Shown: positions 842 to 64,000 of the stretch, one piece after another | How positions within the stretch are numbered: position 1 is the first letter of the stretch | Layout: each line of letters starts with the position of its first letter | Origin: Heterodontus francisci | Taxonomy: Eukaryota | Assembly: GCF_036365525.1 (NCBI RefSeq) | Contig: NC_090395.1 | Span: forward strand, 65,311,326 to 65,375,325 | Direction: 5' to 3' | Length of the DNA stretch: 64,000 bases | Notes under the pieces: model-generated | What the model saw: only the letters and a program-made list of their open reading frames with translations | What the model was told of the DNA's origin: nothing | Databases searched by the model: none | Made by a program: the position numbers and the translations under genes

Positions 842-2728
842 GGGAGACCTAGAGGAGTATAGAATGTGTAGTGGGGGGTGGGCGGCGGGGTGGGGGATAC
901 TTAAAAAGTAACTAGGAGAACGAAGAAGGGATATGAAAATACACTGGTGGGCAAGATAAAAGAAAATCCCAAGGCATTTTATAAGGATATTAAGGGCAAG
1001 AGGATAACCAAGGAAAGAATAGGGCCCATAAAGGACCATAGTGGCAAAGCTATGTGGAGCCGGAGGACATAGGTGAGGTTTTAGTTGATTACTTTTCATC
1101 TGTTCTCACTGTGGAGAAGGACGATGTAGGTGTAGAGATCAGGGAGGGGGATTGTGATATACTCGACAGAAGTAATTACCTGAAAAGAAGGAAGTATTAG
1201 CTGTTTTAGTGGGCTTAAAAGCGGATAAACCCCCAGGCCCAGATGAGATGTATCCCAGTCTGTTATGTGAGGCAAGGCAGGTGATAGCAGGGGCTCTGAC
1301 ACAAATTTTCAAATCCTCTCTGGCCACATGAGAGGATTGGAGGACAGTGAATGTGGTACCATTATTCAAGAAGGATAGCAGGGATAAACCAGGTAATTAC
1401 AGGCCGGTGTGTCTAACATCGGTGGTAGGGAAACTATTGGAAAAAATTCTGAGGGACAGGATTAATCTCCACTTGGAGAGGCAGGGTTTATTCAAGGGTA
1501 GTCAGCAGGGCTTTGTCGGGGGAGATCGTGTCTAACAAACTTGATTGAATTTTTCGAGGAGGTAACTAGAAGTGTAGATGAGGGTAAAGCAGTTGATGTA
1601 GTCTACATGGACTTCAGTAAGGCTTTTGATAAGGTCCCGCATGGGAGATTGGTTAAGAAGGTAAGAGCCCCTGGAATCCAGGGCAATTTGGCAAATTGGA
1701 TCCAAAATTAGCTTAGTGGCAGGAGGCAGAGGGTAATGGTTGAGGGTTGTTTTTGCAATTGGAAGCCTGTGACCAGTGGTGTACCGCAGGGATCAGTGCA
1801 GGGACCCTTGCTGTTTGTAGTGTACATTAATGATTTAGACGTGAATATAGGAGGTATGATCAATAAGTTCACAGATGACATGAAAATTGGTGGTGTTGTA
1901 AATAGCGAGGAGGAAAGCCTTAGATTACAGGATGATATAGATGGGCTGGTAAGATGGGCGGAGCTGTGGCAAATGGAATTTAATCCTGAGAAGTGTGAGG
2001 TGATGCATTTTGGGAGGACGAACAAGGCAAGGGTTAGGTAGGTTAGGATGGTAGGACCCGAGGAAGTACAGAGGGTCAGAGGGACCTTGGTGTTCTTGTC
2101 CATGGATCACTGAAGGCATCAGCACAGGTAGATAAGGTGGTTAGGAAAGCATAGATGGATACATACCTTTATTAGCCAAGGCACAGAATATAACAGCAGG
2201 GAGGTTATGATGCAGCTGTATAAAATGCGAGTTAGGCCACAGCTGGAGTACTATGTACAGTTCGTTGCCTGGGCTGGAGCATTTCAGCTATGAAGAGAGA
2301 CCTGATAGGCTAGGATTGTTTTCGTTGGAGCAGAGGAGGCTGAGGGGGGATCTGATTGAGGTATACAAAATTATGAGGGGCATTGATAGAATAGATAGGA
2401 AGAAACTTTTTCCCTTAGCGGAGTGGCCAATAACCAGGGAGCACAGATTTAAGGGAAGGGGCAGAAGGCTTAGAGGGGATTTGAGGAAAAATATTTTCAC
2501 CCAGAGGGTGGTTGGAATCTGTAAGACACTCCCTGAAGGGGTGGTAGAGGCAGGAACCCTCACAACATTTAAGAAGTATTTAGATGAGCACTTGGAACGC
2601 CATAGCATACAAGGCTACGGGCCAAGTGCTGGAAAATGGGATTAGAATAGATAGGTGCTTGATGGCCGGCACAGACATGATGGGTTGAAGGGCCTGTTTC
2701 TGTGCTGTATAATTCTTTGACTCGATGA
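842..2728 (+). mobile_element. 5'-truncated CR1 (HER1-like) LINE
   Basis: RT fragments (GNYRPV, GVPQG, FTDD), CR1 C-terminus, degenerate ACTCTATG-type tail; absent at the paralogous site near 25309. Confidence 0.9.
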
Positions 2729-3235
2729 CTTAGAAGTAAAGTCATGAAATCTGTTTTGTTTTCAGGCATAATGTACTGTATTCACATACAATACTGTTTT
2801 ATACTCTTGTTACACATTCACACTTCTACAAGCTTTCTCACACATTTATAAAAAGAAAACATTCTCCGCTGATTCTATTATCACCATGGCAACAGAAAAC
2901 AGGCCACCGAGGAAGTTTTTTTCACCAACAGAAAAATAACTTTCTAATCAAAATTCACCCCAAATCATTGGACATCATTACCTTAAACTCCAAGAATTAA
3001 ATGACTTGTGATCTGTGAAGGTGATTTTCTCCCACCCGCCACTTTTTGACTACAAGTGGGATTTATGCCATTATCCATTCGTGTAAACTGGGATTGAGCT
3101 AATGAGAGATGTTAATGGGCCTGAGGGTGGCAATTTGTAATATTTTTTCCCCAATTTTCTAGAAGTGTACATGTGCAGGACTTAAACAAGCTATGATGTG
3201 TCTTCTAATTAACAAGAATACTGGTGAATGAAGCA

Positions 3236-3327: not shown

Positions 3328-5850
3328 TCTTCTTTGGCCTCCTTATCTCGAGAGACAATGGGTAAGCGCCTGGAGGTGGTCAGTGGTTTGTGAAGCAGCA
3401 CCTGGAGTGGCTCTAAAGGCCAATTCTAGAGTGACAGGCTCTTCCACAGGTGCTGCAGAAAAACTTGTTTGTTGGGGCTGTTACACAGTTGGCTCTCCCC
3501 TTGTGCTTTTGTCTTTTCTCCTGCCAACTGCTAAGTCTCTTTGACTCGCCACACTTTAGCCCCACCTTTATGACTGCCCGCCAGCTCTGGCGAACGCTGG
3601 CAACTGACTCCCACGACTTGTGATCAATGTCACAGGACTTCATGTCGCGTTTGCAGACGTCTTTAAAGCGGAGACAAGGACGGCCGGTGGGTCTGATACC
3701 AGTGGCGAGCTCGCTGTACAATGTCTCTTTGGGGATCTTGCCATCTTCCATGCAGCTCACATGGCCAAGCCATCTCAAGCGCCGCTGACTCAGTAGTGTG
3801 TATAAGCTGGGGATGTTGGCCGCCTCGAGGACTTCTGTGTTGGAGATACGGTCCTGCCACCTGATGCCAAGTATTCTCCGGAGGCAGCGAAGATGGAATG
3901 AATTGAGTCGTCGCTCTTGGCTGACGTACGTTGTCCAAGCCTCGCTGCCATAGAGTAAGGTACTGAGGACACAGGCTTGATACACTCCGACTTTTGTGTT
4001 CCGAGTCAGTGCGCCATTTTCCCACACTCTCTTGGCCAGTCTGGACATAGCAGTGGAAGCCTTTCCCACGTGCTTGTTGATTTCTGCATTGAAAGACAGG
4101 TTACTGGTGATAGTTGAGCCTAGGTAGGTGAACTCTTGAACCACTTCCAGAGCGTCGTCGCCAATATTGATGGATGGAGCATTTCTGACGTCCTGCCCCA
4201 TGATGTTCGTTTTTTTGAGGCTGATGGTTCGGCCAAATTCATTGCAGGCAGCCGCAAACCTGTCGATGAGACTCTGCAGGCACTCTTCAGTGTGAGATGT
4301 TAAAGCAGCATCGTCAGCAAAGAGGAGTTCCCTGATGAGGACTTTCCGTACTTTGGACTTCGCTCTTAGACGGGCAAGGTTGAACAACCTGCCCCCAGAT
4401 CTTGTGTGGAGGAAAATTCCTTCTTCAGAACACTTGAACGCATGTGAAAGCAGCAGGGAGAAGAAATTCCCTAAAAGTGTGGGTGCGAGATCACAGCCCT
4501 GTTTCACGCCACTCAGGATAGGAAAGGGGTCTGATGAGGTGCCGCCATGTTGAATTGTGCCTTTCATATTGTCATGGAATGAGGTGATGATACTTAGTCG
4601 CTTTGGTGGACATCCAATCTTTTCTAGTAGTCTGAAGAGACCATGTCTGCTGACGAGGTCAAAGGCTTTGGTGAGATCAATGAAAGCAATGTAGAGGGGC
4701 ATCTGTTGTTCGCGGCATTTCTCCTGTATCTGACGAAGGGAGAACAGCATGTCAACGGTTGATCTCTCTGCACGAAAGCCACACTGTGCCTCAGGGTGGA
4801 CGCGCTTGGCCAGCTTCTGGAGCCTGTTTAGAGCGACTCGAGCAAAGACTTTCCCCACTATGCTGAGCAGGGAGATTCCACGGTAGTTGTTGCAGTCACC
4901 TTAATTTTTATAGAGGGTGATGATATTGGCATCGCGCATGTCCTGAGGTACTGCTCCCTCGTCCCAGCACAGGCATAGCAGTTCATGTAGTGCTGAGAGT
5001 ATAGCAGGCTTGGCACTCTTGATTATTTCAGGGGTAATGCTGTCCTTCCCAGGGGCTTTTCCGCTGGCTGGAGAATCAATGGCATCACTGAGTTCCGATT
5101 TTGTTGGCTGTATGTCCAGCTCATCCATGACTGGTAGAGGCTGGGCTGCATTGAGGGCAGTCTCAGTGACAACATTCTCCCTGGAATACAGTTCTAGGCT
5201 CAACCCAGCGGTCCATTTGTTTGCGTTGGTCAGTGATTATGTCCCCTGATTTAGATTTGAGGGGGGCGATCTTCTTGATGGTTGGCCCAAGAGCTCTCTT
5301 AATGCCATCATACATTCCTCTGATGTTTCCGGTGTCAGAGGCCAGCTGAATATGACTGCATCGGTGTTGCCAGTAGTCATTTGCGCAGCGCCTGGCTGTT
5401 CTTTGTGCAGTGCTTCTGGCTGCTTTAAGTGCTACGGATGTTAACTCACTGGGGGCTTTCTTGTAGTTCAACAGTGCAATGCGCTTTGCGGCTATGACAG
5501 GTTCCAGCTCTTCATTATGAGATTGAAACCAGTCTGCATTTCTCTTCGCACGTTTGCCGTAGGTGGTCAAAGCTGACTCATAGATGGCGTCTCTGATGTG
5601 GGCCCACTTGGTCTCAGCAAGCCCTGTGGGAGTGTTTTGAAGGGCTGTTACAAGTGAATTTAGAAATTTTTGTAACAGCTGTGGATGAGAAATTCTGCTC
5701 ATGTTGATGCGCGGGTGGCCCTTCTGCTTGGAATGATGCAACTTCTTTGGTCTGAGTCTAACCTTGCTGCACACCAGAGAGTGGTTGGTGTCGCAGTCCG
5801 CACTGTGGAAGCTGCGTGTGATTTGAACACTGTTTAAGGAGGCTCGCCTG
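3328..5850 (-). mobile_element. RTE-clade (BovB-like) LINE, 5'-truncated, relatively young
   Basis: 481-aa RT ORF 3413-4858 (QCGFR, AFIDLTKAFD, GVKQG, LFADD, C-terminal CxxC) plus upstream ORF pieces; GAA-type tail. Confidence 0.9.
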
Positions 5851-11338: not shown

Positions 11339-11589
11339 CTGGAGACAATACTGCTGCACGTGACTGGGATTGATTTTAAGCATACCAACACCTGAACTTT
11401 TCAACACTGACTGTTGAGAAAATGGACAGAAGAAAATGGAACTTTTTCTGCAAAAGTGGAATGAAGTGTTTGGAGTATACAAGTCCAGTTTTACCAGTAG
11501 CAAAGCCCACTTCTGGTGTGCTCTGGAATAATTGCTCTCGGACTCCGTCAACAGAGGACGATCAGCCCAGGGAAATATGAAGGATATGT

Positions 11590-13359
11590 GCAGGCAGAAT
11601 CAGGAGAATTTATAATGGGGAATAGAGAAATGGCAGAAACGCTAAATGATTACTTTGAGTCTGTCTTCACTGAGGAAGATACAAGAAATCTCCCAGAATT
11701 AGAGATCCAAGGGATTAGGGGGAATAAAGAATTGAAGGAAATTAGGATTAGTAGGAAGGTTGTATTGGAGAAATTAATGGGGCCGAAGGTTGATAAGTCC
11801 ACAGGACCTGATATTCTACATCCAAGAGTGTTGAAAGAGGTAGTTATGGAGATAATGGATGCATTGGTGATCATCTTGCAAAATTCTATAGATTCTGGAG
11901 TGGTTCCTGCAGATTGGAATGTTGCAAATGTCACCCCATTATTTAAGAAGGGAGGGAGACGGAAAACAGGGAATTACAGACCTGTTAGCCTTACATCAGT
12001 CATTGGGAAAATGCTAGAATCTATTCTAAAAGACATGATAAATGGACACTTGAATTACAATGATCTGATTGGATATAGTCAACATGGATTTATGAATGAG
12101 AAATCATGTTTGGAGTTGTTGGAGTGTTTTGAGGATGTTACTAACAGAATTGATAAAGGGGAGTTGGTGGACGTGATATACTTGGATTTTCAAAAGGCTT
12201 TTGATTGGTTAGACAAATTAAAGCACATGGGATAGGAGGTAATATACTGACATGGATTAAGGATTGGTTAACAGGCAGAAAGCAAAGAGTAGGAATAAAC
12301 AGGTCATTCTTGCATTGGCAGGCTGTGAATAGTGGGGTACTGCAGGGATCAATGCTTGGGCCCCAGCTGTTCACAATATAAATCAATGATTTGGATGTGG
12401 GGACCAAATATAGTTTTTCCAAGTTTGCAGATGACGCAAAACTAGGTGGCAATGTGTGTTGTGAGGAAGATGCAAAGCAGCTTCAAGGGGATTTGGACAG
12501 ACTTAGTGAGTGGGCAAGAATGTGGCAGATGGAATATAATGTGGAAAAATTTGAGGTTATCCACTTTAGTAGGAGGAATAGATGTGCAGAGTATTTCTTA
12601 AATGGTAAGAGATCAGAAAGTGTAAATGTACAAAGGGACTTGGGTGTCTTTTCAATAAGTCACTGAAAGCTAACATGCAGGTGCAGCAAGCAATTAGGAA
12701 GCCTAATGGCATGTTAGCCTTTATCACAAGAGGATTTGAGTACAGGAGTAGTGAAGTCTTGCTTCAATTGTGTAGAACCTTGGTTAGAGCGCACTTGCAG
12801 TACAGTGTGCCATTTCAGTCTCCTTACCTTAGGAAGGATATTATTGCCATAGAGGGAGTACAACGAAGATTCACCAGATTTGTTCCCGGGATGGCGGGAC
12901 TGTCCTATGAAGAGAGATGGGGGAAACTGTGCTTGTATTTTCTAGAGTTTCAAAGAATGAGAGGTGATCTCATTGAAACCTACAAAATACTTAAAGGGAT
13001 AGACAGGGTAGATGCAGCTTAGATGTTTGCCCTGGTTGGGGAGTCTAGAAGCAGGGGACACAATTTCAAAATAAGGGGGAAGCCACTTAGGACTGAGATG
13101 AGGAGAACTTTCTTTACTCAGAGGGTTGTGAATCTTTGGAATTCTCTACCCCAGAGGGCTGTGGAAGCTCAGTCATTGGGTATGTTTAAAGCAATGATTG
13201 ACAGATTTCTAAATATCAATGACATAAACGGATATGGGGATAGTGTGGGAAAAAGACATTGAAGTGAATGATCAGCCATGATCATATTGAATGGCAGGGC
13301 AGGCTCGATGGGCTGAATGGCTTCTTCCTGCTCCTTTGCTCCTATGTTCCTGTGTTCCT
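11590..13359 (+). mobile_element. 5'-truncated CR1 LINE
   Basis: RT ORF fragments 11516-13262; tail CCTATGTTCCTGTGTTCCT. Confidence 0.9.
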
Positions 13360-15571: not shown

Positions 15572-16063
15572 CTGTTGGCATATTCATGATGAAAGATTAT
15601 TAACAACTCTGGCAGGATCAACAAAAACAGTATTTAACCAAATAAACACTGCTATTCCTGTTGTTATGGCAATCTTCATTGTAATTGCAGATCGAATCCC
15701 ATTTTTAATATCAAATTCTTTCTGATGAGTCTCATGTCACCAGCACTGTTACTGAAATTATTGCATATACTCTGGTTTTGATCCTAATTTTCCTCAATAT
15801 GGAGTCCTGTGATTTCCTGTTGTGAGCTGGTTGTGGAGCCAGATTCCCCACAATCACTGCATTCTGAGAAAATTATTCCTGTTGTCATTGTTGATTTATA
15901 TTCTTTATTGATACTGATCATTGCTATTAAGGAAGACTAAAAATCTTTCAGAGAAACAAATTCTTTCATTCTTTCTGACAGTTTCTTTCGGTCTGTTCAT
16001 TAGTTTATTTCACTTTCTACAGTTGAGTTACCTGGGCCTAAACTGCTTTTTCTGATCATAGGA

Positions 16064-19000
16064 TAGGTTGTGGCGTAGTGGTATTATCACTGGACTAGTA
16101 ACCCAGAAACCCAGGGTATTTCTCGAGGGACATGGATTCGAATCCCACCACGGCAGAAGGTGGAATTTGAATTTAACTATTCAAAAATCTGGAATTAAAA
16201 CTGGTCTAATGATGGTCATGAAACCATTGTCGATTGTTGTAAAAACCCATCTGGTTCACTAATGCCCTTTAGGGAAGGAAATCTGCTGTCCTTACCTGGT
16301 TGGCCTACATGTGACTCCAGACCCACAGCAATGTGGTTGACTCTTACATGCCCTCTGAAATGGCTTAGCAAGCCACTCAGTTGTACCTCACCGCTACAAA
16401 GTCAATAAAAAGGAATGAAACCGGACGGACCACTCGTCATCGACCGAGGCACCGGAAACGACAACGGCAAACCCAGCCATCGACCCTGCAAAGTCCTCCT
16501 TATTAACATCTGGGGGCTTGTGCCAAAGTTGAGAGAGCTGTCCCACAGACCAATCAAGCAACAGCCTGACATAGTCATACTCACGGAATCATACCTTACA
16601 GACAATGTCCCAGACACTGCCATCACCATCCCCGGGTATGTCCTGTCCCATCGGCAGGACAGACCCACCAGAGGTGGCGGCACAGTGGTCTACAGTAGGG
16701 AGGGAGTTGCCCTGGGAGTCCTCAACATTGACTCCGGACCCCATGAAGTCTCATGGCATCAGGTCAAACATGGGCAAGGTAACTTCCTACTGATTACCAC
16801 CTACTACCCTCCCTTAGCTGATGACTCAGTACTCCTCCATGTTGAACAGCACTTGGAGGAAGCACTGAGGGTGGCAAGGGCACAAAATGTACTCTGGGTG
16901 GGGGACTTCAATGTTCATCACCAAGAGTGGCTCGGTAGCACCACTACTGACCGAGCTGGCTGAGTCCTAAAGGACATAGCTGCTAGACTGGGTCTGCAGC
17001 AGGTGGTGAGGGAACCAACACAAGAGAAAAACATACTTGACCTCGTCCTCACCAATCTGCCTGCCGCAGATGCTTCTGTCCATGACAGTATTGGTAGGAG
17101 TGACCACTGCACAGTCCTTGTGGAGACGAAGTCCCGCCTTCACATTGTGGATACCCTCCATCGTGTTGTGTGGCACTACCACCGTGCTAACGGGGATAGA
17201 TTTCGAACAGATATAGCAATGTAAAACTGGGCATCCATGAGGCGCTGTGGGCCATCAGCAGCAGCAGAATTGTACTCAACCACAATCTGTGACCTCATGG
17301 CCCGGCATATCCCCCACTCTACCATTACTATCAAGCCAGGAGACCAACCCTGGTTCAATGAAGAGTGCAGGAGGGTATGCCAGGAGCAGCACCAGGCATA
17401 CCTCAAAATGAGGTGTCAACCTGGTGAAGCTACAACCCAGGACTATCTGCGTGCCAAAGTGCTTAAGCAGCATGCGATAGACAGAGCTAAGCGATCCCAT
17501 AACCAACGGATCAGATCTAAGCTCTGCAGTCCTGCCACATCCAGCCATGAATGGTGTTGGACAATTAAACAACTAACTGGAGGAGGTGGCTCCACAAATA
17601 TTCCCATCCTCAATGATGGGGGAGCTCAGCACATCAGTGCGAAAGAGAAGGCTGAAGCATTTGCAACAATCTTCAGCCAGAAGTGCCGAGTTGATGATCC
17701 ATCTCGGCCTCTTCCCGAAGTCCCCAGCATCACAGATGCCAGACTTCAGCTAATTCAATTCACTCCGCGTGATATCAAGAAACGACTGAAGGCACTGGAT
17801 ACTGCAAAAGCTATGAACCCTGACAATATTCCGGCAATAGTACTGAAGACCTGTGCTCCAGAACTTGCCACGCCCCTAGCCAAGCTGTTCCAGTACAACT
17901 ACAACACTGGCATCTACCCTGCAATGTGAAAAATTGCCCTGGTATGTCCTGTACGCAAAAAGCAAGACAAGTCCAACCTGGCCAATTACCGCCCCATCAG
18001 CCTACTCTCAATCATCAGTAAAGTGATGGAAGGTATCATCAACAGTGCCATCAAGCAGCACTTGCTTAGCAGCAACCTGCTCAGTGGCGCTCAGTTTGGG
18101 TTCCGCCAGGGCCACTCAGCACCTGGCCTCATTACAGCCTTGGTTCAAACATGGACAAAAGAGCTGAACCCAAGAGGTGAGGTGAGAGTGATTGCCCTTG
18201 ACATCAAGGCAGCATTTGACTGAGTATGGCATCAAGGAGCCCTAGCAAAACTGAGGTCAATAAGAATCAGGGGGAAAACCCTCCACTGGCTGGAGTCATA
18301 CCTAGCGCAAAGGAAGATGGTTGTGGTTGTTGGAGGTCAATCATCTGAGCTCCAGGACATCACTGCAGGAGTTCCTCAGGGTAGTGTCCTAGGCCCAACC
18401 ATCTTCAGCTGCTTCATCAATGACCGACCTTCAATCATAAGGTCAGAAGTGGGGATGTTCGCTAATGATTGCACAATATTCAGCACCATTCATGACTCCT
18501 CAAATACTGAAGCAGTCTGTGTAGAAATGCAGCAAACCTGGACAATATCCAGGCTTGGGCTGATAAGTGGCAAGTAACAATCGCGCCACACAAGTGCCAG
18601 GCAATGACCATCTCCAACAAGAGAGAATCTAACCATCTCCCCTTGACATTCAACAGCATTACCATCGCTGAATCCCCCACTATCAACATCCTAGGGGCCA
18701 CCATTGACCAGAAACTGAACTGGAATAGCCACATAAATACCATGGATACAAGAGCAGGTCAGAGGCTAGGAATCCTGAGGCGAGTAACTCACTTCCTGAC
18801 TCCCCAAAGCCTGTCCACCATCTACAAAGCACAAGTCAGGAGTGTGATGGAATACTCTCCACTTGCCTGGATGGGTGCAGCTCCAACAACACTCAAGAAG
18901 CTCGACACCATCCAGGACAAAGCAGCCCGCTTGATTGGCACCCCATCTACAAACATTCACTCCCTCCACCACCAACGCACCGTGGCAGCAGTGTGTACCC

Positions 19001-19355
19001 TCTACAAGATGCACTGCAGCAATGCACCAAGGCTCCTTAGACAGCACCTTCCAAACCCGCGACCTCGACCAACTAGAAGGACATGGGCACCAAATGCATG
19101 GAAACAACACCACCTGCAAGTTCCCCTCCAAGTCACATACCATCCTGACTTGGAACTATATCACCGTTCCTTCACTGATGCTGGGTCAAAATCCTGGAAC
19201 TCCCTTCCTAACAGCACTGTGGGTGTACCTACCCCAAATGGACTGCAGCGGTTCAAGAAGACAGCTCACCACCACCTTCTCGAGGGCAATTAGGGATGGG
19301 CAATAAATGCTGGCCTAGCCAGCGATGCCCACATCCCTGAATGAATAAAAAAAAA
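16064..19355 (+). mobile_element. Near full-length single-ORF APE-RT LINE (CR1/L2-group) with a tRNA-derived SINE-type 5' head
   Basis: A box TGGCGTAGTGG 16071-16081, B box GATTCGAATCC 16135-16145; ORF 16415-19293 (APE motifs TESYL, GDFN, SDH; RT motifs QFGFR, GVPQGS); poly(A) end. Confidence 0.9.
16415..19293 (+). pseudogene. Endonuclease-reverse transcriptase ORF of the tRNA-headed LINE
   Basis: ORF pieces starting at 16415, 17003, 17237, 18023 and 18317 share one frame, separated by single stops; one frameshift near 18535. Confidence 0.85.
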
Positions 19356-19369
19356 TAGGGACATCGAAA

Positions 19370-21420
19370 TATTTGGAACAGGTGTGGGCCACTCACCTGC
19401 CTTAGCTGCATCTCCCTCGACACCCATAGCTATCAATAATCTATCATTCTCAGTCTTGAAAGCTTCACTTGTCCCATAATCCACAGCTTTTTGGGGAGAG
19501 CTTTAAAAATTTCTTTTAACTTTTATATGAAAAAGTGCCTCCTGATTTCGTTCCTGAATAACCCAGCTCTACTGTTAAGATTATATCCCCTTGTTCTTGA
19601 TTTCTCCATCTGTGGAAATAATTTCTCTGTATCCACCCCATCAAATCTTTTTAAGATTTTAAATATCTTGATCAGATAAGCTATCAATCTTTAAACTCTC
19701 GGGAGTTCAAATCAATTTTATGTAACCCCTCCTCGTAATTTAACCCTGTAAGCCATGGCATCATCCTGGTGAATCTGCATTGCAACCCCTTCAAGGCCAA
19801 TGTATCCTTCCTGAAGTGTGGTGCTCTGAGCTCCAGATGATGTCTGACCAACGCTTTCTACTACTGAAGCATAACTTCCTCTCCGTTGTAATCAACCCCT
19901 CCTTGAGATAAAGAACAACATTCCATTAACCTTTTTGATTGCTTTTTCTAACCTGTCGACTAGCTTTAATGATGTGTTTACTTGGACTCCCAATTCTCTT
20001 GAGGATGTAACTAGTAGAGTTGATGAGGGACAGCCAATGGATATGGTTTATTTGGACTTTCAGAAGGCTTTCGACAAAGTCCCACATAAGAGATTAGCAT
20101 GTAAAATTAAAGCGCATGGGATTGGGGGTAGTGTATTGCGATGGATAGAAAATTGGTTGGCAGACAGGAAACAAAGAGTAGGCATAAATGGGTCTTTTTC
20201 CGAATGGCAGGCAGTGACTAGTGGGGTACCGCAGGGATCGGTGCTAGGACCCCAGCTATTCACAATATACATTAATGATTTAGATGAGGGAACTAAATGT
20301 AATATCTCCAAATTTGCAGATAACACAAAACTGGGTGGGAAGGTGAGTTGTGAAGAGGACGCAGAGAGGCTTCAGGGTGATTTGGACAAGTTGAGTGAGT
20401 GGGCAAATGCATGGCAGATGCAGTATAATATGGATAAATGTGAGGTTATCCACTTTGGTAGCAAACACAGGGAGGCAGATTATTATTTGAATGGCTATTA
20501 ACTGAGAGAGGGGAATATGCAACGAGACCTGGGTGTTCTCGTACACCAGTCGCTGAAAGTAAGCATGCAGGTGCAACAGGCGGTAAAAAAGGCAAATGGA
20601 ATGTTGGCCTTCATAGCAAGAGGATTCGAGTACAGAAGCAGGGATGTTTTGCTGCAATTGTACAGGGCCTTGGTGAGGCTACACCTGGAATATTGTGTGC
20701 AGTTTTGGTCTCCTTATCTGAGAAAGGATGTTCTTGCTATAGAGGGAGTGCAGAGAAGGTTTACCAGACTGATTCCTGGGATGGTGGGACTGACGTATGA
20801 GGAGAGATTAAGTCGGTTAGGATTATATTTACTGGAGTTCAGAAGAGTGAGGGGGGATCTCATAGAAACCTATAAAATTCTAACAGGACTTGACAGGGTA
20901 GATGCAGGAAGGATGTTCCCGATGGTGGGGGAGTCCAGAACCAGGGGTCATAGTCTAAGGATACGAGGTAAACCTTTCAGGACTGAGATGAGGAGAAATT
21001 TCTTCACCCAGAGAGTGGTGAGCCTGTGGAATTCGCTACCACAGAAAGCAGTTGAGGCCAAAACATTGTATGTTTTCAGGAAGGAGTTAGATATAGCTCT
21101 TGGAGCGAAAAGGATCAAAGGATATGGGGGGAAAGCAGGAACAGGCTACTGAGTTGAATGATCAGCCATGATCATAATGAATGGTGGAGCAGGCTCGAAG
21201 GGCCAAATGGCCTACTCCTGCTCCTATTTCCTATGTTTCTGTGTTTCTTTGACCCTCTACAGTCTCTAGTTTCTCACCATTTAAATGCTGTGATTTCTCT
21301 TTACTTCACACTTGCCCACATTGAACTCCATTTGCCTTGGTTTTGCCCACTAACAAACAATCTGTCTATGTCCCTTTGCAACGACCTGTTTTTATCTGCA
21401 CTACTTACCAATGCTACCTC
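19370..21420 (-). mobile_element. Old degenerate CR1 remnant interrupted by a younger CR1
   Basis: Degenerate CR1 3' sequence at 19370-19995 resumes at about 21250. Confidence 0.55.
19996..21249 (+). mobile_element. 5'-truncated CR1 LINE
   Basis: RT ORFs 19935-20501 and 20517-21152; tail CCTATGTTTCTGTGTTTCT. Confidence 0.9.
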
Positions 21421-27279: not shown

Positions 27280-28045
27280 CATTCCCAAATCCGTTGCACA
27301 GAGGAAAAAAAAAGTGCTGGAGTGGTAAGTAGAGTCCAGTGACAGACACTGATCAAGTAGTTTGCTCTGCAATGGAGGGTGTTGAGCTTCTTTAGATTTG
27401 TTGCAATTGCATTCCCTCAGGAAAGCCATGAGTATTCCAACAGTCGAACCTTGTAGATGCTGGAGAGACTTTAAAGGCTCAGGAATGATCCACTTTTTAC
27501 ACAGCATCTGGTCTGCTTTGTAGTAGCAGTCCAGTTAATCCTGTAATCAATGTTGACCTCCAATATTTTGATGGTAGGGGACTTGGCACTGCTGACGTCA
27601 TTGAAGGTCCTTTGTTCTGAGGTGGTTGTAGTTATCTCGTTGCCTGGCACTTATATAGCGTAAATGTTGCCAGACATTTGTTGCCAGGTCATGTTGTGGT
27701 CTGGCAAGGCTGCTTCATTATTAGAGGAGATGTGAATGGAGTTGGGTACTATAGGACACAGTAATTTTTTTTCTCTGCTTGTAAAGTAATAGTCCCTGAA
27801 CCATTTCAGATTTATCTAAGGTGATCACTTAGCACCAATGGAACAACAGCCGTGTTGATACTATACACAGAATAAGTAAATAATGTACCATGAGTGATCA
27901 AAAGTACACATGACCAAAAAGAAAAGTTGGATTAGTTAGTTTTTTTATCCTTTCATGGGATGTGGGCATCGCTGGCAAGGCCAGCATTTGTTGCCCATCC
28001 CTAAATGCCCTTGAGAAGGTGGTGGTGAGCTGCCTTCTTGAACGA
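27280..28045 (-). mobile_element. Degenerate fragments of the tRNA-headed LINE family (body 27280-27750, tail 27940-28045)
   Basis: Similar to 18540-19350, including the AGGGCA(A/T)TTAGGGATGGGCAA tail. Confidence 0.6.
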
Positions 28046-34692: not shown

Positions 34693-35404
34693 CTGTGAAA
34701 CAGAAGAGTGGAAAGCTTATTTCTGCAAAGTGAAGCTCATTTTCATTCTTTGAGCAATACAGCCTCTCTTTCCAAATTTCCCAATGTCCATATCCATTCT
34801 GTACTGCTAAAAGTGATGATGTTTGCAGGGTGCATTTCCACAGGCATCAGTTGCCTACTGGCACCATATAAATGGCCACTGGTCAATATTCATGCGTGAC
34901 CCTTGATAGTGACTATTAACAGGCTATTCAGCTGCAGTAGAATCACAGATAACTCCAATCCTGTCCTCACTTAATATCCACAAGAAACCTTTTCCAGCAG
35001 GTTGCTGGATAGCGATCAGGAGAAGAAATCCTGAACCATCCTCCCCTGCATGAACGGAGTCCATTTCTCCACAGAAGGTACATGAGCAGTAGGCCTTAAG
35101 GAGAACCGAGTTAAATCTAGAAACATATGAGCATTGTAACCATGCCACGGATCCAATCACACTCATAAGCAGTGCCAGGGAGATCTAGCTTCTTTAAATA
35201 GTGCAAATGAACTGTAACACATGTGAATACACACAGTTAGAGATGGACAAGTGCAGCCACAATTTATAGAATCACAGAGGTTTACAGCATGAAGGAGGCC
35301 ATATGACCCATCGTGTCAGTGCCAGCTGACAAGGAGCTATCCAGCCTAATTCCACTTTCTGGCTCTTGGTCTGTAGCCTTGTAGGTTATGGCCCTTCAAG
35401 TGCA

Positions 35405-37205
35405 TATCCAACCAAGGAAAGAGTAGGGCCCATTAGGGACCAAGGTGACAATCTGTGTGTGGAGCCGGAGGACATAGGTGAGGTTTTAAATGATTACTTC
35501 TCATCTGTGTTCACTATGGAGAAGGACGATGTAGGTGTACAGATCAGAGAGGGGGATTGTGATATACTTGAACAAATTAGCATTGAAAGGGAGGAAGTAT
35601 TAGCTGTTTTAGCGGGCTTAAAAGTGGATAAATCCCCAGGTCCAGATGAGATGTATCCTAGGCTGTTATGTGAGGCAAGGGAGGAGATAGCAGGGGCTCT
35701 GACACAAATTTTCAAATCCTCTCTGGCCACAGGAGAGGTACCAGAGGATTGGAGGACAGCGAATGTGGTACCATTATTCAAGAAGGGTAGCAGGGATAAA
35801 CCAAGTAATTACAGGCCAGTGAGTCTAACATCAGTGGTAGGGAAACTGTTGGAAAAAATTCTGAGGGACAGGATTAATCTCCAGTTAGAGAGGCAGGGAT
35901 TAATCAGGGATAGTCAGCATGGCTTTGTCAGGGGGAGATCGTGTCTAACAAACTTGATTGAATTTTTTGAGGCGGTGACTAGATGTGTAGATGAGGGTAA
36001 AGTAGTTGATGTAGTCTACATGGACTTCAGTAAGGCATTTGATAAGATCCTGCATGGCAGATTGGTTAAAGAAGGTAAGAGCCCAAGGGATCCAGGGCAA
36101 TTTGGCAAATTGGATCCAAAATAGGCTTAAAGGCAGGAGGCAGAGGGTGATGGTTGAGGGTTGTTTTTGCGAGTGGAAGCCTGTGACCACTGGTGTACCA
36201 CAGGGATCGGTGCTGGGACCCTTTCTGTTTGTAGTGTACATTAATGATTTAGACATGAATATAGGAAGTATGATCAGTAAGTTTGCAGATGACAAGAAAA
36301 TTGGTGGTCATAAATAGTGAGGAGGAAAGCCTTAGATTACAGGATGATATAGATGGGCTGGTAAAATGGGCGGAGCAATGGCAAATGGAATTTAATCCTG
36401 AGAAGTGTGAGGTGATGCATTTTGGGAGGACGAACAAGGCAAGGGAATATACAATGGATGATAGGACCCTAGGAAGTACAGAGGGTCAGAGGGACCTTGG
36501 TGTACTTGTCCATCGATCACTGAAGGCAACAGCACAGGTAGATAAGGTGGTTAGGAAGTCATAGGGGATACTTGCCTTTATTAGCTGAGGCATAGAATAT
36601 AAGAGCAGGGAGGTTATGGTGGAGTTGTATAAAACGCTAGTTAGGCTACAGCTGGAGTACTGTGTCCAGGTCTGGGCACCACACTATAGGAAGGATGTGA
36701 TTCCCCTGGAGAGGGTGCAGAGGAGATTCATCAGGCTGTTGCCTGGGCTGGAGCATTTCAGCTATGAAGAGAGACTGAAAAGGCTGGGCTTGTTTTCCTT
36801 AGAATAGAGAAGGCTGAGGGGGGACATGATTGAGGTATACAAAATTATGAGGGGCATTGATGGGTTAGATCGGAAGAAACGTTTTCCCTTAGCGGAAGGG
36901 TCAGTTACCAGGGGGTATAGATTTAAGGTAAGGGGCAGGAGGTTTCGAGGGGATTTGAGGACAATCTTTTTCATCCAGCGGGTAGTTGGAATCTGGAACG
37001 CACTGCCTGAAGAGGTGGTAGAGGCAGGAACCCTCACAGCATTTAAGAAGTATTTAGATGAGCACCTGAAATGCCATAGCATACACGGCTACGGGCCAAG
37101 TGCTGGAAAATGGGATTAGAATAGTTAGGTGCTTGATGGCCAGCACAGACACGATGGACCGAAGGATCTGTTTCTGTGCTGTATAACTCTACGACTCTAT
37201 GACTT
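35405..37205 (+). mobile_element. 5'-truncated CR1 LINE (same subfamily as 842-2728)
   Basis: RT ORFs 35366-37119; tail ACTCTACGACTCTATGACT. Confidence 0.9.
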
Positions 37206-45373: not shown

Positions 45374-45804
45374 TTTTTTTATTCGTTCAGGGGATATGGG
45401 CGCCACTGGCTAGGTACTGCCCATCCCTAATTGCCCTTGAGTAGGTGGTGGTGAGCTGCCTTCTTGAACTGCTGCAGTCCTTGTAGCAGTTTGATACAAC
45501 TGAGAGACTCGCTAGGCCATTTAAGAGTCAACCACATTGCTGTGGATCTGGAGTCACAAGTAGGCCAGACCAGATAAGGACAGCAGGGTTCCTTCCCTAA
45601 AGGACATTAGTGAACCAGATGGGTTTTTACATCATAAAGCAATGGTTTCACAATCACCACTAGACTAGCTGTTTAATTCCAGATATATTAATTGAATTCA
45701 AATTCCACAATCTGCCGTGGTGGGATTTGAACCCATGTCCCCAAAGCATTAGCCTGGGGCTGTGAGTTACTAGTCTAGTGACATTACCACTATGCCACCG
45801 CCTT
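45374..45804 (-). mobile_element. tRNA-derived SINE (MER131/Meta-like core) sharing head and tail with the 16064-19355 LINE
   Basis: A box TGGCATAGTGG, B box GGTTCAAATCC, core AAACCCATCTGGTTCACTAATGTCCTTTAGGGAAGG, LINE tail, poly(A). Confidence 0.85.
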
Positions 45805-46745: not shown

Positions 46746-47214
46746 ATACTGTGCATACTAGGAACTGAAATTAAGCAAACATTGTACCTATATTTCAAAA
46801 AAAGAGATGAATCTGATCCAGGTTTGCAGGCCTAAAATCAATAAAAGGTAAAATAATGGAAACTATTCTAAGGACATGGCCCGTGGCAATGTGGAGAAGT
46901 AAATGGAAAAGCAAATAGAATTTTGAGACTCATTGCCAGAACATGGAATGCCATGCAACAGAAGGCATGCTGATGTCTTCTAGTGCATTCATTCTTAGCT
47001 TTTGCCATCAGATCACTATCTAGTCCAATGCATTGGCAGAATTGCATGTGTGTGTACATCACGACACCCCAAATTCCATGGGCATGGCCAATGCTCAGGG
47101 TGAACATCCAGATATGTTGCTGCGTAATAGTAGCAGGCACTTAACGGAGGAAGGAAAATCTTTAGAGTGTCACCATATTGCTCTGAGTGGGCAACGCACA
47201 GGCCAGTTGGGCCT

Positions 47215-47892
47215 AACATCAACATCCGGTGGACACCATTGACCAGAAATCTATCTGGACCAGCCATATAAATACTGTGACTACAAGAGCAAGTCAGAAG
47301 CTGGGAATTCTGTGGCGAGTAACTCAGTTCTTGACTCCCCAAAGCCTGTCTAGCATCTACAAGACACAAGTCAGGAGTGTGATAGAATAGTCCTCACTGG
47401 CCTGGATGACTGTAGCTGCAACAACACTCAAGAAACTCAACACCATCCAGGACAATTAAGCAGCCTACTTGATTGACACCCATCCACCACCTTAAACATT
47501 CACTCCCTACATCACCGGTGCACAGCGGCAGCAGTGTGTACCATCTACAAGATGCACTGCGCAACTCACCAAGGCTCTTTCGACAGAACCTTCCAAACCC
47601 ATGACCTCTGCCACCTAGAAGGACTAGGGCAGCAGATGCATGGGAACACCACCATCTGCAAGGTCCCCTCCAAGCCACACACCATCCTGAATTGGAACTA
47701 TATTGCTGTTCCTCCACTGACTCTAGGTCAAAATTCTGCAACTCCTTCCCTGTGGGTCTACCTATGCCACACGGACTGGAGCAGTTCAAGTAGGTGGCTC
47801 ACCACCACCTCCTCCTCAAGGGCAGTTAGGGATGGGCAATAAATGTTGGCCTTGCCAGCAACTCTCACATCCCATGAACAAATAAATAAAAA
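47215..47892 (+). mobile_element. 5'-truncated copy of the tRNA-headed LINE family
   Basis: Colinear with about 18680-19355; A-rich tail. Confidence 0.85.
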
Positions 47893-48419
47893 TATTTAGT
47901 AGCCTTATTTTTTCATTTTGATCTAGGAATGCTGGTCCCCCTCTGGCACTTGTTCCATTAGAAGTTACATTATGGGACCCAGGACAATGGCTACACCTGC
48001 TGTCAGTAGACATGGAGGTGTTTCTCCTGGGATTCCTGAGGAAACTAGTTATGCATTCTAGACACTCCCCGCCTAGTTTCTGCTGAGATGGAAGACTGCG
48101 GAGGGTGGGAGGGCTTTGGTAGAAGAAATTCCTGACCCACTTGGCTGAATTTGACCCCTCCCTGTAAATGGGGCAGAAACCTGATGGATCCATTTTCTAC
48201 TCGCAGAATTCCAGCACCTCCACCTGTACTGGAGCAAGCGGAATCTCCACTGTATAAAAACGTCTTCACTAACGGATCAAACAAATTACAATAAGCCTGT
48301 CAAAAAATGCTTTTTTTAAAAAAAAAGAGCATCGCAATAGACCCTCTTAGCAGAACATTTAACACTTTATTTAAGTATATAGGAATTACTCATTGGGACG
48401 AAACGAATGTTTATCTTAC

Positions 48420-55562: not shown

Positions 55563-58500
55563 GAACAAAGAACAAAGAAAATTACAGCACAGGAACAGGC
55601 CCTTCGGCCCTCCAAGCCTGCGCCGATCCAGATCTTCTATCTAAACATGTCGCCTATTTTCTAAGGGTCTGTATCTCTTTGCTTCCTGCCCATTCATGTA
55701 TCTGTCTAGATACATCTTAAAAGACGCTATCGTGCCCGCGTCTACCACCTCCGCAGACAACGCGTTCCAGGCAACCACCACCCTCTGCATAAAGAACTTT
55801 CCACGCATATCCCCCCTAAACTTTTCCCCTCTCACTTTAAACTCGTGACCCCTAGTAATTGAATCCCCCACTCTGGGAAAAAGCTTCTGGCTATCCAACC
55901 TGTCTATACCTCTCATGATTTTGTACACCTCAATCAGGTCCCCCCTCAACCTCCGTCATTCTAATGAAAATAATCCTAATCTACTCAACCTCTCTTCATA
56001 GCTAGCGCCCTCCATACCAGGCAACATCCTGGTGAACCTCCTCTGCACCCTCTCCAAAGCATCTACATCCTTTTGGTAATGTGGCGACCAGAACTGCACG
56101 CAGTATTCCAAATGTGGCCGAACCAAAGTCCATTACAACTGTAACATGACCTGCCAACTCTTGTACTCAATACCCCGTCCGATGAAGGAAAACATGCCGT
56201 ATGCCTTCTTGACCACTCTATTGACCTGCGTTGCCACCTTCAGGGAACAATGGACCTGAACACCCAAATCTCTCTGTACATCAATTTTCCCCAGGACTTT
56301 TCCATTTACTGTATAGTTCACTCTTGAATTGGATCTTCCAAAATGCATCACCTCGCATTTGCCCTGATTGAACTCCATCTGCCATTTCTCTGCCCAACTC
56401 TCCAATCTATCTATATTCTGCTGTATTCTCTGACAGTCCCCTTCACTATCTGCTACTCCACCAATCTTAGTGTTGTCTGCAAACTTGCTAATCAGACCAC
56501 CTATACTTTCCTCCAAATCATTTATGTAGATCACAAACAACAGTGGTCCCAGCACGGATCCCTGTGGAACACCACTGGTCACACGTCTCCATTTTGAGAA
56601 ACTCCCTTCCACTGCTACTCTCTGTCTCCTGTTGCCCAGCCAGTTCTTTATCCATCTAGCTAGTACACCTTGGACCCCATGCGCCTTCACTTTCTCCATC
56701 AGCCTACCATGGGGAACCTTATCAAACGCCTAACTGAAGTCCATGTATATGACATCTACAGCCCTTCCTTCATCAATCAACTTTGTCACTTTCTCAAAGA
56801 ATTCTATTAAGTTGGTAAGACATGACCTTCCCTGCACAAAACCATGTTGCCTATCACTGATAAGCCCATTTTCTTCCAAATGGGAATAGATCCTATCCCT
56901 CAGTAACTTCTCCAGCAGCTTCCCTACCACTGACGTCAGGCTCACCGGTCTATAATTACCTGGATTATCCCTGCTACCCTTCTTAAACAAGGGGACAACA
57001 TTAGCAATTCTCCAGTCCTCCGGGACCTCTCCCGTGTTTAAGGATGCTGCAAAGATATCTGTTAAGGCCCCAGCTATTTCCTCTCTCGCTTCCCTCAGTA
57101 ACCTGGGATAGATCCCATCCGGACCTGGGGACTTGTCCACCTTAATGCCTTTTAGAATACCCAACACTTCCTCCCTCCTTATGCCAACTTGACCTAGAGT
57201 AATCAAACATCTGTTCCTAACCTCAACATCCTTCATGTCCCTCTCCTCGGTGAATACCGATGCAAAGTACTCGTTTAGAATCTCACCCACTTTCGCTGAC
57301 TCCACGCATAACTTTCCTCCTTTGTCCTTGAGTGGGCCAATCCTTTCTCTAGTTACCCTCTTGCTCCTTATATATGAATAAAAGGCTTTGGGATTTTCCT
57401 TAACCTTGTTTGCTAAAGATATTTCATGACCCCTTTTAGCCCTCTGAATTCCTCGTTTCAGATTGGTCCTACATTCCCGATATTCTTTCAAAGCTTCGTC
57501 TTTCTTCAGCCACCTAGACCTTATGGGATTGAGGTTCACAAGGAGGAGGTGTTATCAATTTTGGAAAGTGTGAAAATAGATAAGTCCCCTGGGCCAGATG
57601 GGATTTACCCTAGGATTCTCTGGGAAGCTAGGGAGGAGATTGCAGAGCCTTTGTCCTTGATCTTTATGTCGTCATTGTCGACAGGAATAGTGCCGGAAGA
57701 CTGGAGGATAGCAAATGTTGTCCCCTTGTTCAAGAAGGGGAGTAGAGACAGCCCTGGTAATTATAGACCTGTGAGCCTTACTTCGGTTGTGGGTAAAATG
57801 TTGGAAAAGGTTATAAGAGACAGGATTTATAATCATCTTGAAAAGAATAAGTTCATTAGAGATAGTCAGCATGGTTTTGTGACGGGTAGGTCGTGCCTCA
57901 CAAACCTTATTGAGTTTTTCGAGAAGGTGACCAAACAGGTGGATGAGGGTAAAGCAATGGATGTGGTGTATATGGATTTCAGTAAGGCGTTTGATAAGGT
58001 TCCCCACGGTAGGCTATTGCAGAAAATACGGAAGTATGGGGTTGAAGGTGATTTAGAGCTTTGGATCAGAAATTGGCTAGCTGAAAGAAGACAGAGGATG
58101 GTGGTTGATGGCAAATGTTCATCCTGGAGTTTAGTTACTAGTGGTGTACCGCAAGGATCTGTTTTGGGGCCACTGCTGTTTGTCATTTTTATAAATGACC
58201 TGGAAGAGGGTGTAGAGGGTGGGTTAGTAAATTTACAGATGACACTAAGGTCGGTGGAGTTGTGGATAGTGCCGAAGGATGTTGTAGGGTACAGAGGAAC
58301 ATAGATAGGCTGCAGAGCTGGGCTGAGAGATGGCAAATGGAGTTTAATGCGGAAAAGTGCGAGGTGATTCACTTTGGAAGGAGTAACAGGAATGCAGAGT
58401 ACTGGGCTAATGGGAAGATTCTTGGTAGTGTAGATGAACAGAGAGATCTTGGTGTCCAGGTGCATAAATCCCTGAAGGTTGCTACCCAGGTTAATAGGGC

Positions 58501-63865: not shown

Positions 63866-64000
63866 AAAGTCATCATTGGAAAGAAGCCCTGTTCTTATTC
63901 CTGTGGTAAATATGGTGTTATTTTAGCTATAATGCAGCTATAATTTATGATGAGAATTGGATAATAGTCATTTCTGTTCTTGTGCTACTAAAACATGCAA

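Follow-up and report, generated by a model that had tools for sequence, protein, structure and literature searches.

[quoted passage not shown] To our knowledge, neither a tRNA-like head nor a purge of T runs has been reported for the 'stringent' LINEs of the UnaL2 and ZfL2-2 type. In the current view, LINEs are Pol II transcripts and retroelements driven by Pol III are short and non-coding (PMC10886601). Among the systems closest to the element described here are the bipartite tRNA-SINEs (Bov-tA, AfroSINE, and SINE2-1_ACar with its partner Vingi-2_ACar; Kojima, 2018, PMC5786205), which are built from a head, a LINE 5′ segment and a LINE 3′ tail, and in which the described partner LINE is headless and the head is thought to have been added to a deleted LINE; the known cases involve RTE and Vingi elements (PMC5786205). 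Single-ORF stringent LINEs with SINE partners (UnaL2 with UnaSINE1, ZfL2-2, and L2-2_CM with SacSINE1, PMC5499810) are compact (~3.3 kb), encode one APE-RT ORF and no ORF1, have a 3′ stem-loop in common with a tRNA-SINE, and carry 5′ UTRs of their own with presumed Pol II transcription. Internal Pol III promoters derived from a small RNA also occur on non-SINE (LTR) retroelements, namely the TRIMp3 elements (Cassandra, Helenus and Ajax; PMC10886601), all of which are short (below ~1.3 kb), non-coding and non-autonomous, and whose autonomous partners are argued to need Pol II (PMC10886601). Finally, RT template switching produces chimeric retrocopies of the U6/L1 type, in which a Pol III RNA is fused 5′ of a LINE, and which are sporadic and lead no further, with junctions that vary and L1 sequence that is truncated.

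In a window of 64,000 nucleotides from the shark Heterodontus francisci (NC_090395.1; positions below are those of the window), the stretch 16064-19355 is an APE-type non-LTR retrotransposon (LINE) that can be set beside each of these systems. It follows the bipartite plan in that the middle of a related SINE corresponds to the LINE 5′ region and the end of that SINE to the LINE 3′ end, but here the full-length LINE copy is itself headed and has an ORF in which terminators of Pol III are avoided. Its likeness to the stringent LINEs is structural and is not an L2 assignment. With the TRIMp3 elements it has in common an internal promoter of small-RNA type on a retroelement that is not a SINE, although it is neither short nor non-coding, and in contrast to the U6/L1 retrocopies it has a fixed junction, which is placed within a shared leader and is found again in other copies.

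The element opens with a tRNA-like head (16061-16155, forward strand) that carries a type-2 Pol III promoter and was delimited from the sequence, by aligning it with the SINE copy at 45.8 kb, and by a relaxed ARAGORN search and an MFE fold. The A box, TGGCGTAGTGG at 16071-16081, matches TRGCNNAGTGG exactly, and the B box, GATTCGAATCC at 16135-16145, differs from GGTTCGANNCC at one position; the SINE copy has the consensus G there. The starts of the two boxes are 64 nt apart, and the element begins 7-10 nt before box A, where homology to the SINE copy sets in (~16061-16064 by alignment). Neither ARAGORN at default settings nor Rfam called a tRNA in the head; ARAGORN called a pseudo-tRNA (16067-16155) only at a relaxed threshold of 90%, and the MFE fold is cloverleaf-like with a z of +0.6. 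The head is tRNA-like only. It is followed by a SINE-type body (16156-16399, forward strand), which is also the leader of the LINE and was recognised by its identity to 45481-45798 on the reverse strand and by contig depth. This body comprises a hypervariable part (~16160-16232) and a strongly conserved core (~16236-16340), and aligning 16070-16399 with 45481-45798 gave 80% identity overall and ~93% in the core. The last 15 nt of the leader (16400-16414, forward strand) are LINE-specific: they are missing from the SINE copy and contain an AATAAA at 16404, 11 nt upstream of the start codon at 16415, which has a G at −3. Up to 16414 the leader contains nine upstream ATGs and its fold is unremarkable (z −1.4), so that the IRES role once suggested for its ~350 nt is unsupported.

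Downstream of the leader lies a single APE-RT frame of ~958 codons (16415-19293, forward strand, from the ORF list and Pfam), with the APE at ~16502-16948 and the RT at ~18035-18538 in the same frame. In the first ORF piece, the APE domain matches Pfam Exo_endo_phos over residues 30-178 (E 4.7e-11), and RVT_1 (profile positions 25-176) is split over two pieces, one above and one below the cutoff, because in-frame stops cut the domain. This nearly full-length copy is dead: besides a single frameshift near 18535 it has four such stops (16961, 17222, 17927 and 18221). The stretch 16064-19355 has no ORF1. The 3′ tail (19240-19346, forward strand), defined by alignment of four tails and by folding, is common to LINE and SINE and forms a stable stem-loop (−37.9 kcal/mol, z −2.9); it contains AATAAA twice (19302 and 19344). 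Its terminus, TGAATGAAT, which we take to resemble L2/MIR tails, is followed by an A run and not by a pure microsatellite. In this copy the run is an A9 (19347-19355, forward strand, read from the sequence), and at this same point other copies finish in longer A runs (loose contig ends at 19336/19337). The element flanks show no clear target-site duplication, the only match being of the ATA/ATAGG type, 3-5 nt long and uninformative. The first sense T run downstream is a T5 (19488-19492, forward strand), 133 nt beyond the tail, which would be the first Pol III terminator past the element. A preliminary description of this DNA had already named the two boxes and the SINE-type core, the single APE-RT ORF from 16415 with no ORF1, the poly(A) end, and a dead copy with stops and one frameshift, all of which our analysis bears out.

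The related SINE copy (45374-45798, reverse strand, found by alignment) consists of head, body and tail and is equivalent to the element minus 16400-19239: its segment 45481-45798 matches 16070-16399, its segment 45374-45480 matches 19240-19353, and the two are joined directly. It contains no T4, and a T4 lies 5 nt beyond its A tail. Several SINE junctions occur (16346, 16359, 16382 or 16384 to 19283; 16385 to 19252 or 19265; 16399 to 19240), and their variety agrees with a history in which SINEs may have arisen repeatedly by deletion from a headed parent. The concern raised earlier that the head-ORF junction might be unique to this locus applies to the head and not to the leader. At 16389 and 16446, contigs in four sequencing runs have the family-majority alleles and not those of the copy at 16064-19355; since these positions sit 45-89 nt inside the contig ends, the contigs bridge 16399/16400, and since the alleles are foreign to this copy, the leader/ORF junction is a family trait. 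Direct linkage of the head to the ORF comes from one locus, 16064-19355. The head-to-core stretch of this copy is a minor variant among the contigs, and therefore headed LINEs could be a sub-lineage.

The sense strand of 16064-19355 contains no run of four or more T, exactly eight TTT and 16 runs of four or more A, in line with the earlier count by eye of no T4, about eight TTT and about 15 AAAA. The T4-free gap around it (3,436 nt, 16052-19487) is the longest of 786 such gaps on both strands of the window, the next being 1,527 nt. Taken on its own, the zero count of T4 is only modest evidence, given expectations of 4.9 after mononucleotide shuffling (P 0.0055), 2.3 after dinucleotide shuffling (P 0.09) and 2.5 after synonymous permutation (P 0.048). 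The signal is far clearer within the ORF, which has four TTT compared with 13.8±2.6 expected under synonymous codon permutation, each of the four being a Phe codon in frame, with no TTT in the other frames. T|T codon boundaries number eight against 28±4 expected (z −4.9), and pentamers with at least four T number two against 13.4; none of the 2000-3000 permutations reached the observed T-run values. A, C and G runs in the ORF are normal. Ten control LINE ORFs in the window gave z values of −3.0 to +0.9 and kept their T4 runs, with the exception of one ORF of 204 codons for which only 0.7 was expected. Other LINE fragments in the window have 2-9 sense-strand T4 runs each, as had been stated for the neighbouring CR1s. 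In a sister family at 61.5-63.8 kb, TTT occurs 31 times and T4 seven times. The truncated copy at 47217-47892 is also poor in T runs, with one TTT compared with 4.9 expected and no T4. Together these data are strong evidence for a T-run purge that is T-specific, strand-specific and beyond base, dinucleotide and codon-usage composition. Of the earlier proposal of selection against Pol III terminators, the part that stands is the depletion itself, as judged against codon-level controls and against other LINE ORFs in the window; the absence of T4, on which it had leaned, contributes only modestly. Base and codon composition, which the preliminary description had named as one possible refutation, does not account for the depletion.

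The explanation that we favour, at a probability of roughly one half, is that the element is a Pol III-driven, single-ORF LINE with a SINE-type head, and that its SINEs derive from it by deletion. Recruitment of TFIIIC and TFIIIB by the two internal boxes would lead to initiation ~7-10 nt before box A, the very point at which the copy starts. Pol III would then traverse the conserved body and the entire ORF of 2.9 kb, followed by the 3′ stem-loop and a templated A run, and would terminate at the first flanking T run; the arrangement at this locus, free of T4 over 16052-19487 and followed by the T5 at 19488, is the one expected of a Pol III unit. The sense-strand purge, achieved mostly through synonymous codon choice and codon order, may let so long a transcript survive. 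Recognition by the RT would depend on the stem-loop tail at the 3′ end and perhaps also on the conserved body at the 5′ end, so that internal deletions from leader to tail would yield SINEs in which both the promoter and the ends needed for recognition are retained. The protein might be made by translating the uncapped RNA, at low efficiency, or RT might be provided in trans by rare read-through RNAs of Pol II. We are more tentative about the fullest form of this model, which seems doubtful although it deserves consideration: an autonomous coding family, among the most abundant repeats of the shark genome, transcribed from end to end by Pol III from a tRNA-derived promoter, with an ORF recoded to lack terminators, one uncapped RNA acting as both template and messenger, and SINEs as its deletion products. 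Several points count against a Pol III reading: an uncapped RNA would serve poorly as an mRNA with nine upstream ATGs, the fold of the leader is unremarkable, a clear target-site duplication is lacking, the T4 count is marginal, and the head is seen joined to the ORF at a single locus and may mark a sub-lineage. In addition, Pol III is deemed poorly processive, which is held to keep such elements under ~1.3 kb (PMC10886601). We found no precedent for a Pol III-driven LINE with a SINE-type head in the literature searched. Overall, the interpretation given in the preliminary description is partly supported. If it is true, a headed LINE would break the division between Pol II-transcribed LINEs and short, non-coding Pol III elements, would imply that SINEs can be born directly when such a LINE loses its interior, would offer a natural test of the maximal length and translatability of a Pol III transcript, and would change how 'chimeric' SINE-LINE consensus sequences in cartilaginous-fish repeat libraries should be handled. 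Whichever polymerase transcribes the element, the avoidance of T runs at the codon level is a clean signature that can be checked.

The copy could instead be a recurrent SINE/LINE chimera, an explanation that we consider rather unlikely. The LINE masters would then be ordinary Pol II elements with the body as their 5′ UTR, the SINE would have arisen by addition of a tRNA head to the 5′ and 3′ ends of the LINE, as in the origin of bipartite SINEs, and an RT copying LINE RNA would switch within the ~250-nt shared body to abundant SINE RNA, ending at the Pol III start of the SINE. RTE and Vingi provide documented examples of SINE bodies that go back to LINE 5′ UTRs (PMC5786205) and template switching is an accepted origin of chimeric retrocopies (PMC5499810); the 5′ end predicted in this way equals the observed one, the family-wide leader/ORF junction is equally compatible with it, and a single headed full-length copy has been verified. 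However, chimera formation leaves the strong, T-specific purge of the sense-strand ORF unexplained, the head-proximal variable region is a minor variant whereas switching predicts the bulk SINE type, and the loose ends listed include no other LINE 5′ end that is prominent.

Less probable still, and in our view distinctly unlikely, is that the headed structure is real and Pol III irrelevant to it, the SINE module serving as a Pol II internal promoter, a 5′ UTR or an RT-binding 5′ element, and T runs being shunned on account of U-tract-binding proteins, cryptic polypyrimidine/3′ splice sites or U-rich polyadenylation elements. LINEs in general are Pol II transcripts (PMC10886601), Vingi and RTE gene-writing templates require both cognate UTRs (PMC13708176), the conserved body core suggests a non-promoter function, and the element has AATAAA hexamers near its 3′ end and a poly(A) terminus. 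Yet this copy begins at the expected Pol III start without a parental upstream flank, an AATAAA lies 11 nt 5′ of the start codon, other LINE ORFs of the same genome show no T-run avoidance, and the polypyrimidine argument predicts a depletion of C runs that is not seen. Chance adjacency or misassembly, with a SINE fragment lying just upstream of a separately inserted LINE, is exceedingly improbable. Nested and adjacent insertions are frequent in this repeat-rich window and a convincing target-site duplication was not found, but chance adjacency needs a 3′ truncation of the SINE exactly at the start of its own tail, no SINE tail is present after the LINE A run, and the junction is bridged by contigs from other copies in four runs. 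The idea that the LINE had inserted into a SINE was also rejected, for want of a SINE tail after the A run.

Two short motifs, sought in the literature searched as a clue to a Deu or V domain in the body, gave no match. Protein-pattern and DNA-pattern scans of metagenome, genome and viral contig collections also gave none, and DNA of the family appears to be absent from those collections. Related proteins, 940-1000 aa long, contain PF00078, PF14529 and PF03372, and PDB matches were limited to distant L1 and R2 RTs (E ~1e-14). This elasmobranch family is very abundant, with ~800,000 contigs per sequencing run. Contig depth is not readable as copy number or expression; all runs consist of contigs, which cannot show transcript starts, strand or ends, and two that are labelled 'RNA?' may be DNA. 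The body is the 5′ bin with the highest contig depth and has many indel variants among the contigs. As is typical of LINEs, contig depth climbs from 5′ to 3′ and 5′-truncated copies have a common 3′ end; within the window, an independent 5′-truncated copy lies at 47217-47892 (forward strand, 82% identity to 18682-19355), and a further truncated copy lies at 27940-28043.

We find that one retroelement copy spans 16061/16064-19355 on the plus strand, as read from the sequence. As the preliminary description had proposed, it opens with a tRNA-like head, whose A box (16071-16081, TGGCGTAGTGG) matches the consensus exactly and whose B box (16135-16145, GATTCGAATCC) carries one mismatch, followed by a non-coding body that ends at 16399. 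Fifteen LINE-specific bases, AATAAA among them, separate this body from the ATG of a single reading frame (16415 to 19293), and the copy ends in a structured tail and an A9 run (19347-19355). Both the reading of the frame and Pfam, which returned an apurinic-type endonuclease (E 4.7e-11) and also reverse-transcriptase segments, support the earlier assignment of a single APE-RT ORF from 16415, and the element leaves no room for an ORF1. The copy is indeed dead, with in-frame stops at 16961, 17222, 17927 and 18221 and one frameshift near 18535. Neither ARAGORN at default settings nor Rfam called a tRNA in the head. Because a tRNA was called only as a pseudo-tRNA (16067-16155) at the relaxed 90% threshold of ARAGORN, and the minimum free energy fold is cloverleaf-like with a z-score that is not significant, the 5' end is most aptly described as a tRNA-like head whose promoter boxes are intact. 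A stable stem-loop at the 3' end (z -2.9), together with the TGAATGAAT terminus, hints that the element may be an L2-type 'stringent' LINE. The nearest named protein matches are Heterodontus francisci (horn shark) gene models with LINE fragments inside, which places the host among the elasmobranchs. A large set of further relatives (P0020, P0173-P0196) consists of compact LINEs whose single APE-RT ORF encodes 940-1000 aa, on assembled contigs only 3.1-4.4 kb long; these proteins are 30-43% identical among themselves.

Recounting the sense strand of 16064-19355 gave no run of four or more T (T4, the Pol III terminator), eight TTT and 16 runs of four or more A, close to the by-eye counts of none, about eight and about 15. 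The T4-free stretch actually extends over 16052-19487 (3,436 nt). Of all 786 gaps between such runs, counted over the two strands of the window, it is the longest; the median is about 100 nt and the second longest 1,527 nt. Among plus-strand gaps, the one ranked fourth in length (47004-47907) spans a second copy of the family. Taken alone, the absence of T4 is weak evidence (expected 4.9, P = 0.0055 by mononucleotide shuffle; 2.3, P = 0.09 by dinucleotide shuffle; 2.5, P = 0.048 by synonymous-codon permutation), whereas the broader T-run signal is strong. When synonymous codons were shuffled with amino-acid sequence and codon usage held fixed (2000-3000 permutations), the ORF held four TTT runs against 13.8±2.6 expected, eight codon boundaries with T on both sides against 28±4 (z -4.9), two pentamers with at least four T against 13.4 and no heptamer with at least five T against 8.8; the first three values were reached by 0 of 2000-3000 permutations, the last by a fraction of 0.007. 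Each of the four TTT is an in-frame Phe codon with a base other than T after it, and none occurs out of frame; runs of A, C and G, like A-A codon boundaries, match the permutation expectation. Phe is encoded by TTT in 21% of cases, and most other NNT/NNC pairs use 32-53% T, Tyr (16%) being the exception.

Applied to ten further LINE ORFs within the window, among them an intact ORF of 481 codons and the sister family at 64-73% nucleotide identity, these tests gave z-scores of -3.0 to +0.9. These ORFs retain T4 runs, except one of 204 codons in which only 0.7 was expected, and TTT per codon is about eight times commoner in them than in the element. In addition, the independent truncated copy at 47217-47892 (+) has one TTT against 4.9 expected and a TT observed/expected ratio of 0.70. 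Since the T-run counts fall below the permutation nulls, the controls lack comparable depletion and the second copy is biased too, base and codon composition does not account for the depletion. The pattern reflects selection against U runs in the element's family, at the RNA or transcription level.

Logan contigs from four runs (three organisms; the two that bear the label 'RNA?' are possibly DNA) were aligned at 80% identity or more. About 800,000 contigs matched per run in each of two large DNA runs, depth climbing from 5' to 3', and the family is among the main repeats of the sampled genomes. A base absent from the window copy makes up nearly all contig depth both at 16389 and at 16446, and in every run these sites lie 45-89 nt from the ends of such contigs. 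Contigs of other copies thus cross 16399/16400, which makes the leader/ORF junction a family feature. The preliminary description had asked whether the head-ORF junction might be unique to this locus: its leader/ORF part recurs in other copies, and head-to-ORF linkage was seen directly here only. The contigs do not connect the ORF with the head, which lies 270 nt further 5', nor do they reveal where RNAs begin or which strand they come from. Scans of metagenome, prokaryote-genome and viral sequence collections returned no further copy. The segment that joins the head to the conserved core (about 16160-16232) is hypervariable among copies, indels of 1-4 nt being numerous, and contig depth there is about 30-fold below that at 16300, so that the window copy carries a minor variant. 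The leader core itself (16236-16340), about 93% identical between the two window copies versus about 75% for the head, may be a named conserved SINE domain (Deu or V).

The window also holds a SINE (45374-45798, -) whose alignment covers 16070-16399 and passes straight on to 19240-19353, so that it equals the element minus 16400-19239. Internally this SINE is free of T4, and one T4 stands 5 nt past its A tail. Similarity between the two begins 7-10 nt 5' of box A, at the expected start of a type-2 Pol III transcript. The joint in this SINE (16399 to 19240) is one of several, as Logan contigs join 16346, 16359, 16382 or 16384 to 19283, and 16385 to 19252 or 19265.

The most economical reading, to which we give roughly even odds, is that the family's retrotransposition template would be a Pol III transcript running from the head into the flank. 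It would start at the head and end at a flanking T run, here T5 at 19488, and even weak T3-type pause sites would accumulate over 3.3 kb, which would account for the purge of TTT alongside T4. A bipartite model (Kojima, 2018; PMC5786205) builds a SINE from a head plus the 5' and 3' parts of a LINE; its partner LINE lacks a head, whereas here the LINE copy is itself headed. If the LINE were likewise headless, headed LINE copies would be chimeras formed by template switching within the shared body; such an origin agrees with the anatomy but gives no reason for the T-run purge. Possibly, instead, the element is transcribed by Pol II and U tracts are shunned for some other reason; this agrees badly with the normal C runs, with a copy that begins where Pol III would initiate, and with the lack of the T-run bias in further LINEs of this genome. 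Chance juxtaposition of a SINE and a LINE was rejected, because the A run is not followed by a SINE tail and other copies share the junction.

The suggestion that the leader serves as an IRES found no support, because it holds nine upstream ATGs and its fold is ordinary (z -1.4); rare Pol II RNAs may instead provide reverse transcriptase in trans. LINEs are regarded as Pol II elements, and Pol III-promoted retroelements have been argued to be length-limited and non-autonomous (PMC10886601). No tRNA-headed LINE appeared in the literature searched, and such an element, if confirmed by a genome-wide census and transcripts, would depart from that view.

In the upstream flank (15910-16017), the sole contig of run X1, and likewise that of X16, shows 12 differences over about 110 nt. 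These runs may sample a different individual or species; alternatively, the flank may have a paralogue. The downstream flank (19356-19555) is moderately repeated, its contig depth being about 1,100 or more versus about 20 upstream, and the element therefore borders directly on another repeat or lies at its margin. At least eight LINE fragments of other families, at 3413-5774 (-), with the intact 481-aa ORF at 3413-4858 (-), 11531-13223 (+), 19962-21146 (+), 35228-37095 (+) and 55611-60102 (both strands), served solely as T-run controls. The sister family (61535-63842, +), a 5'-truncated copy with an open piece of 288 aa, is 64-73% identical in nucleotides to 18202-19308; its T-run content is normal (31 TTT, seven T4), and its final 910 nt (63011-63920) are T4-free.
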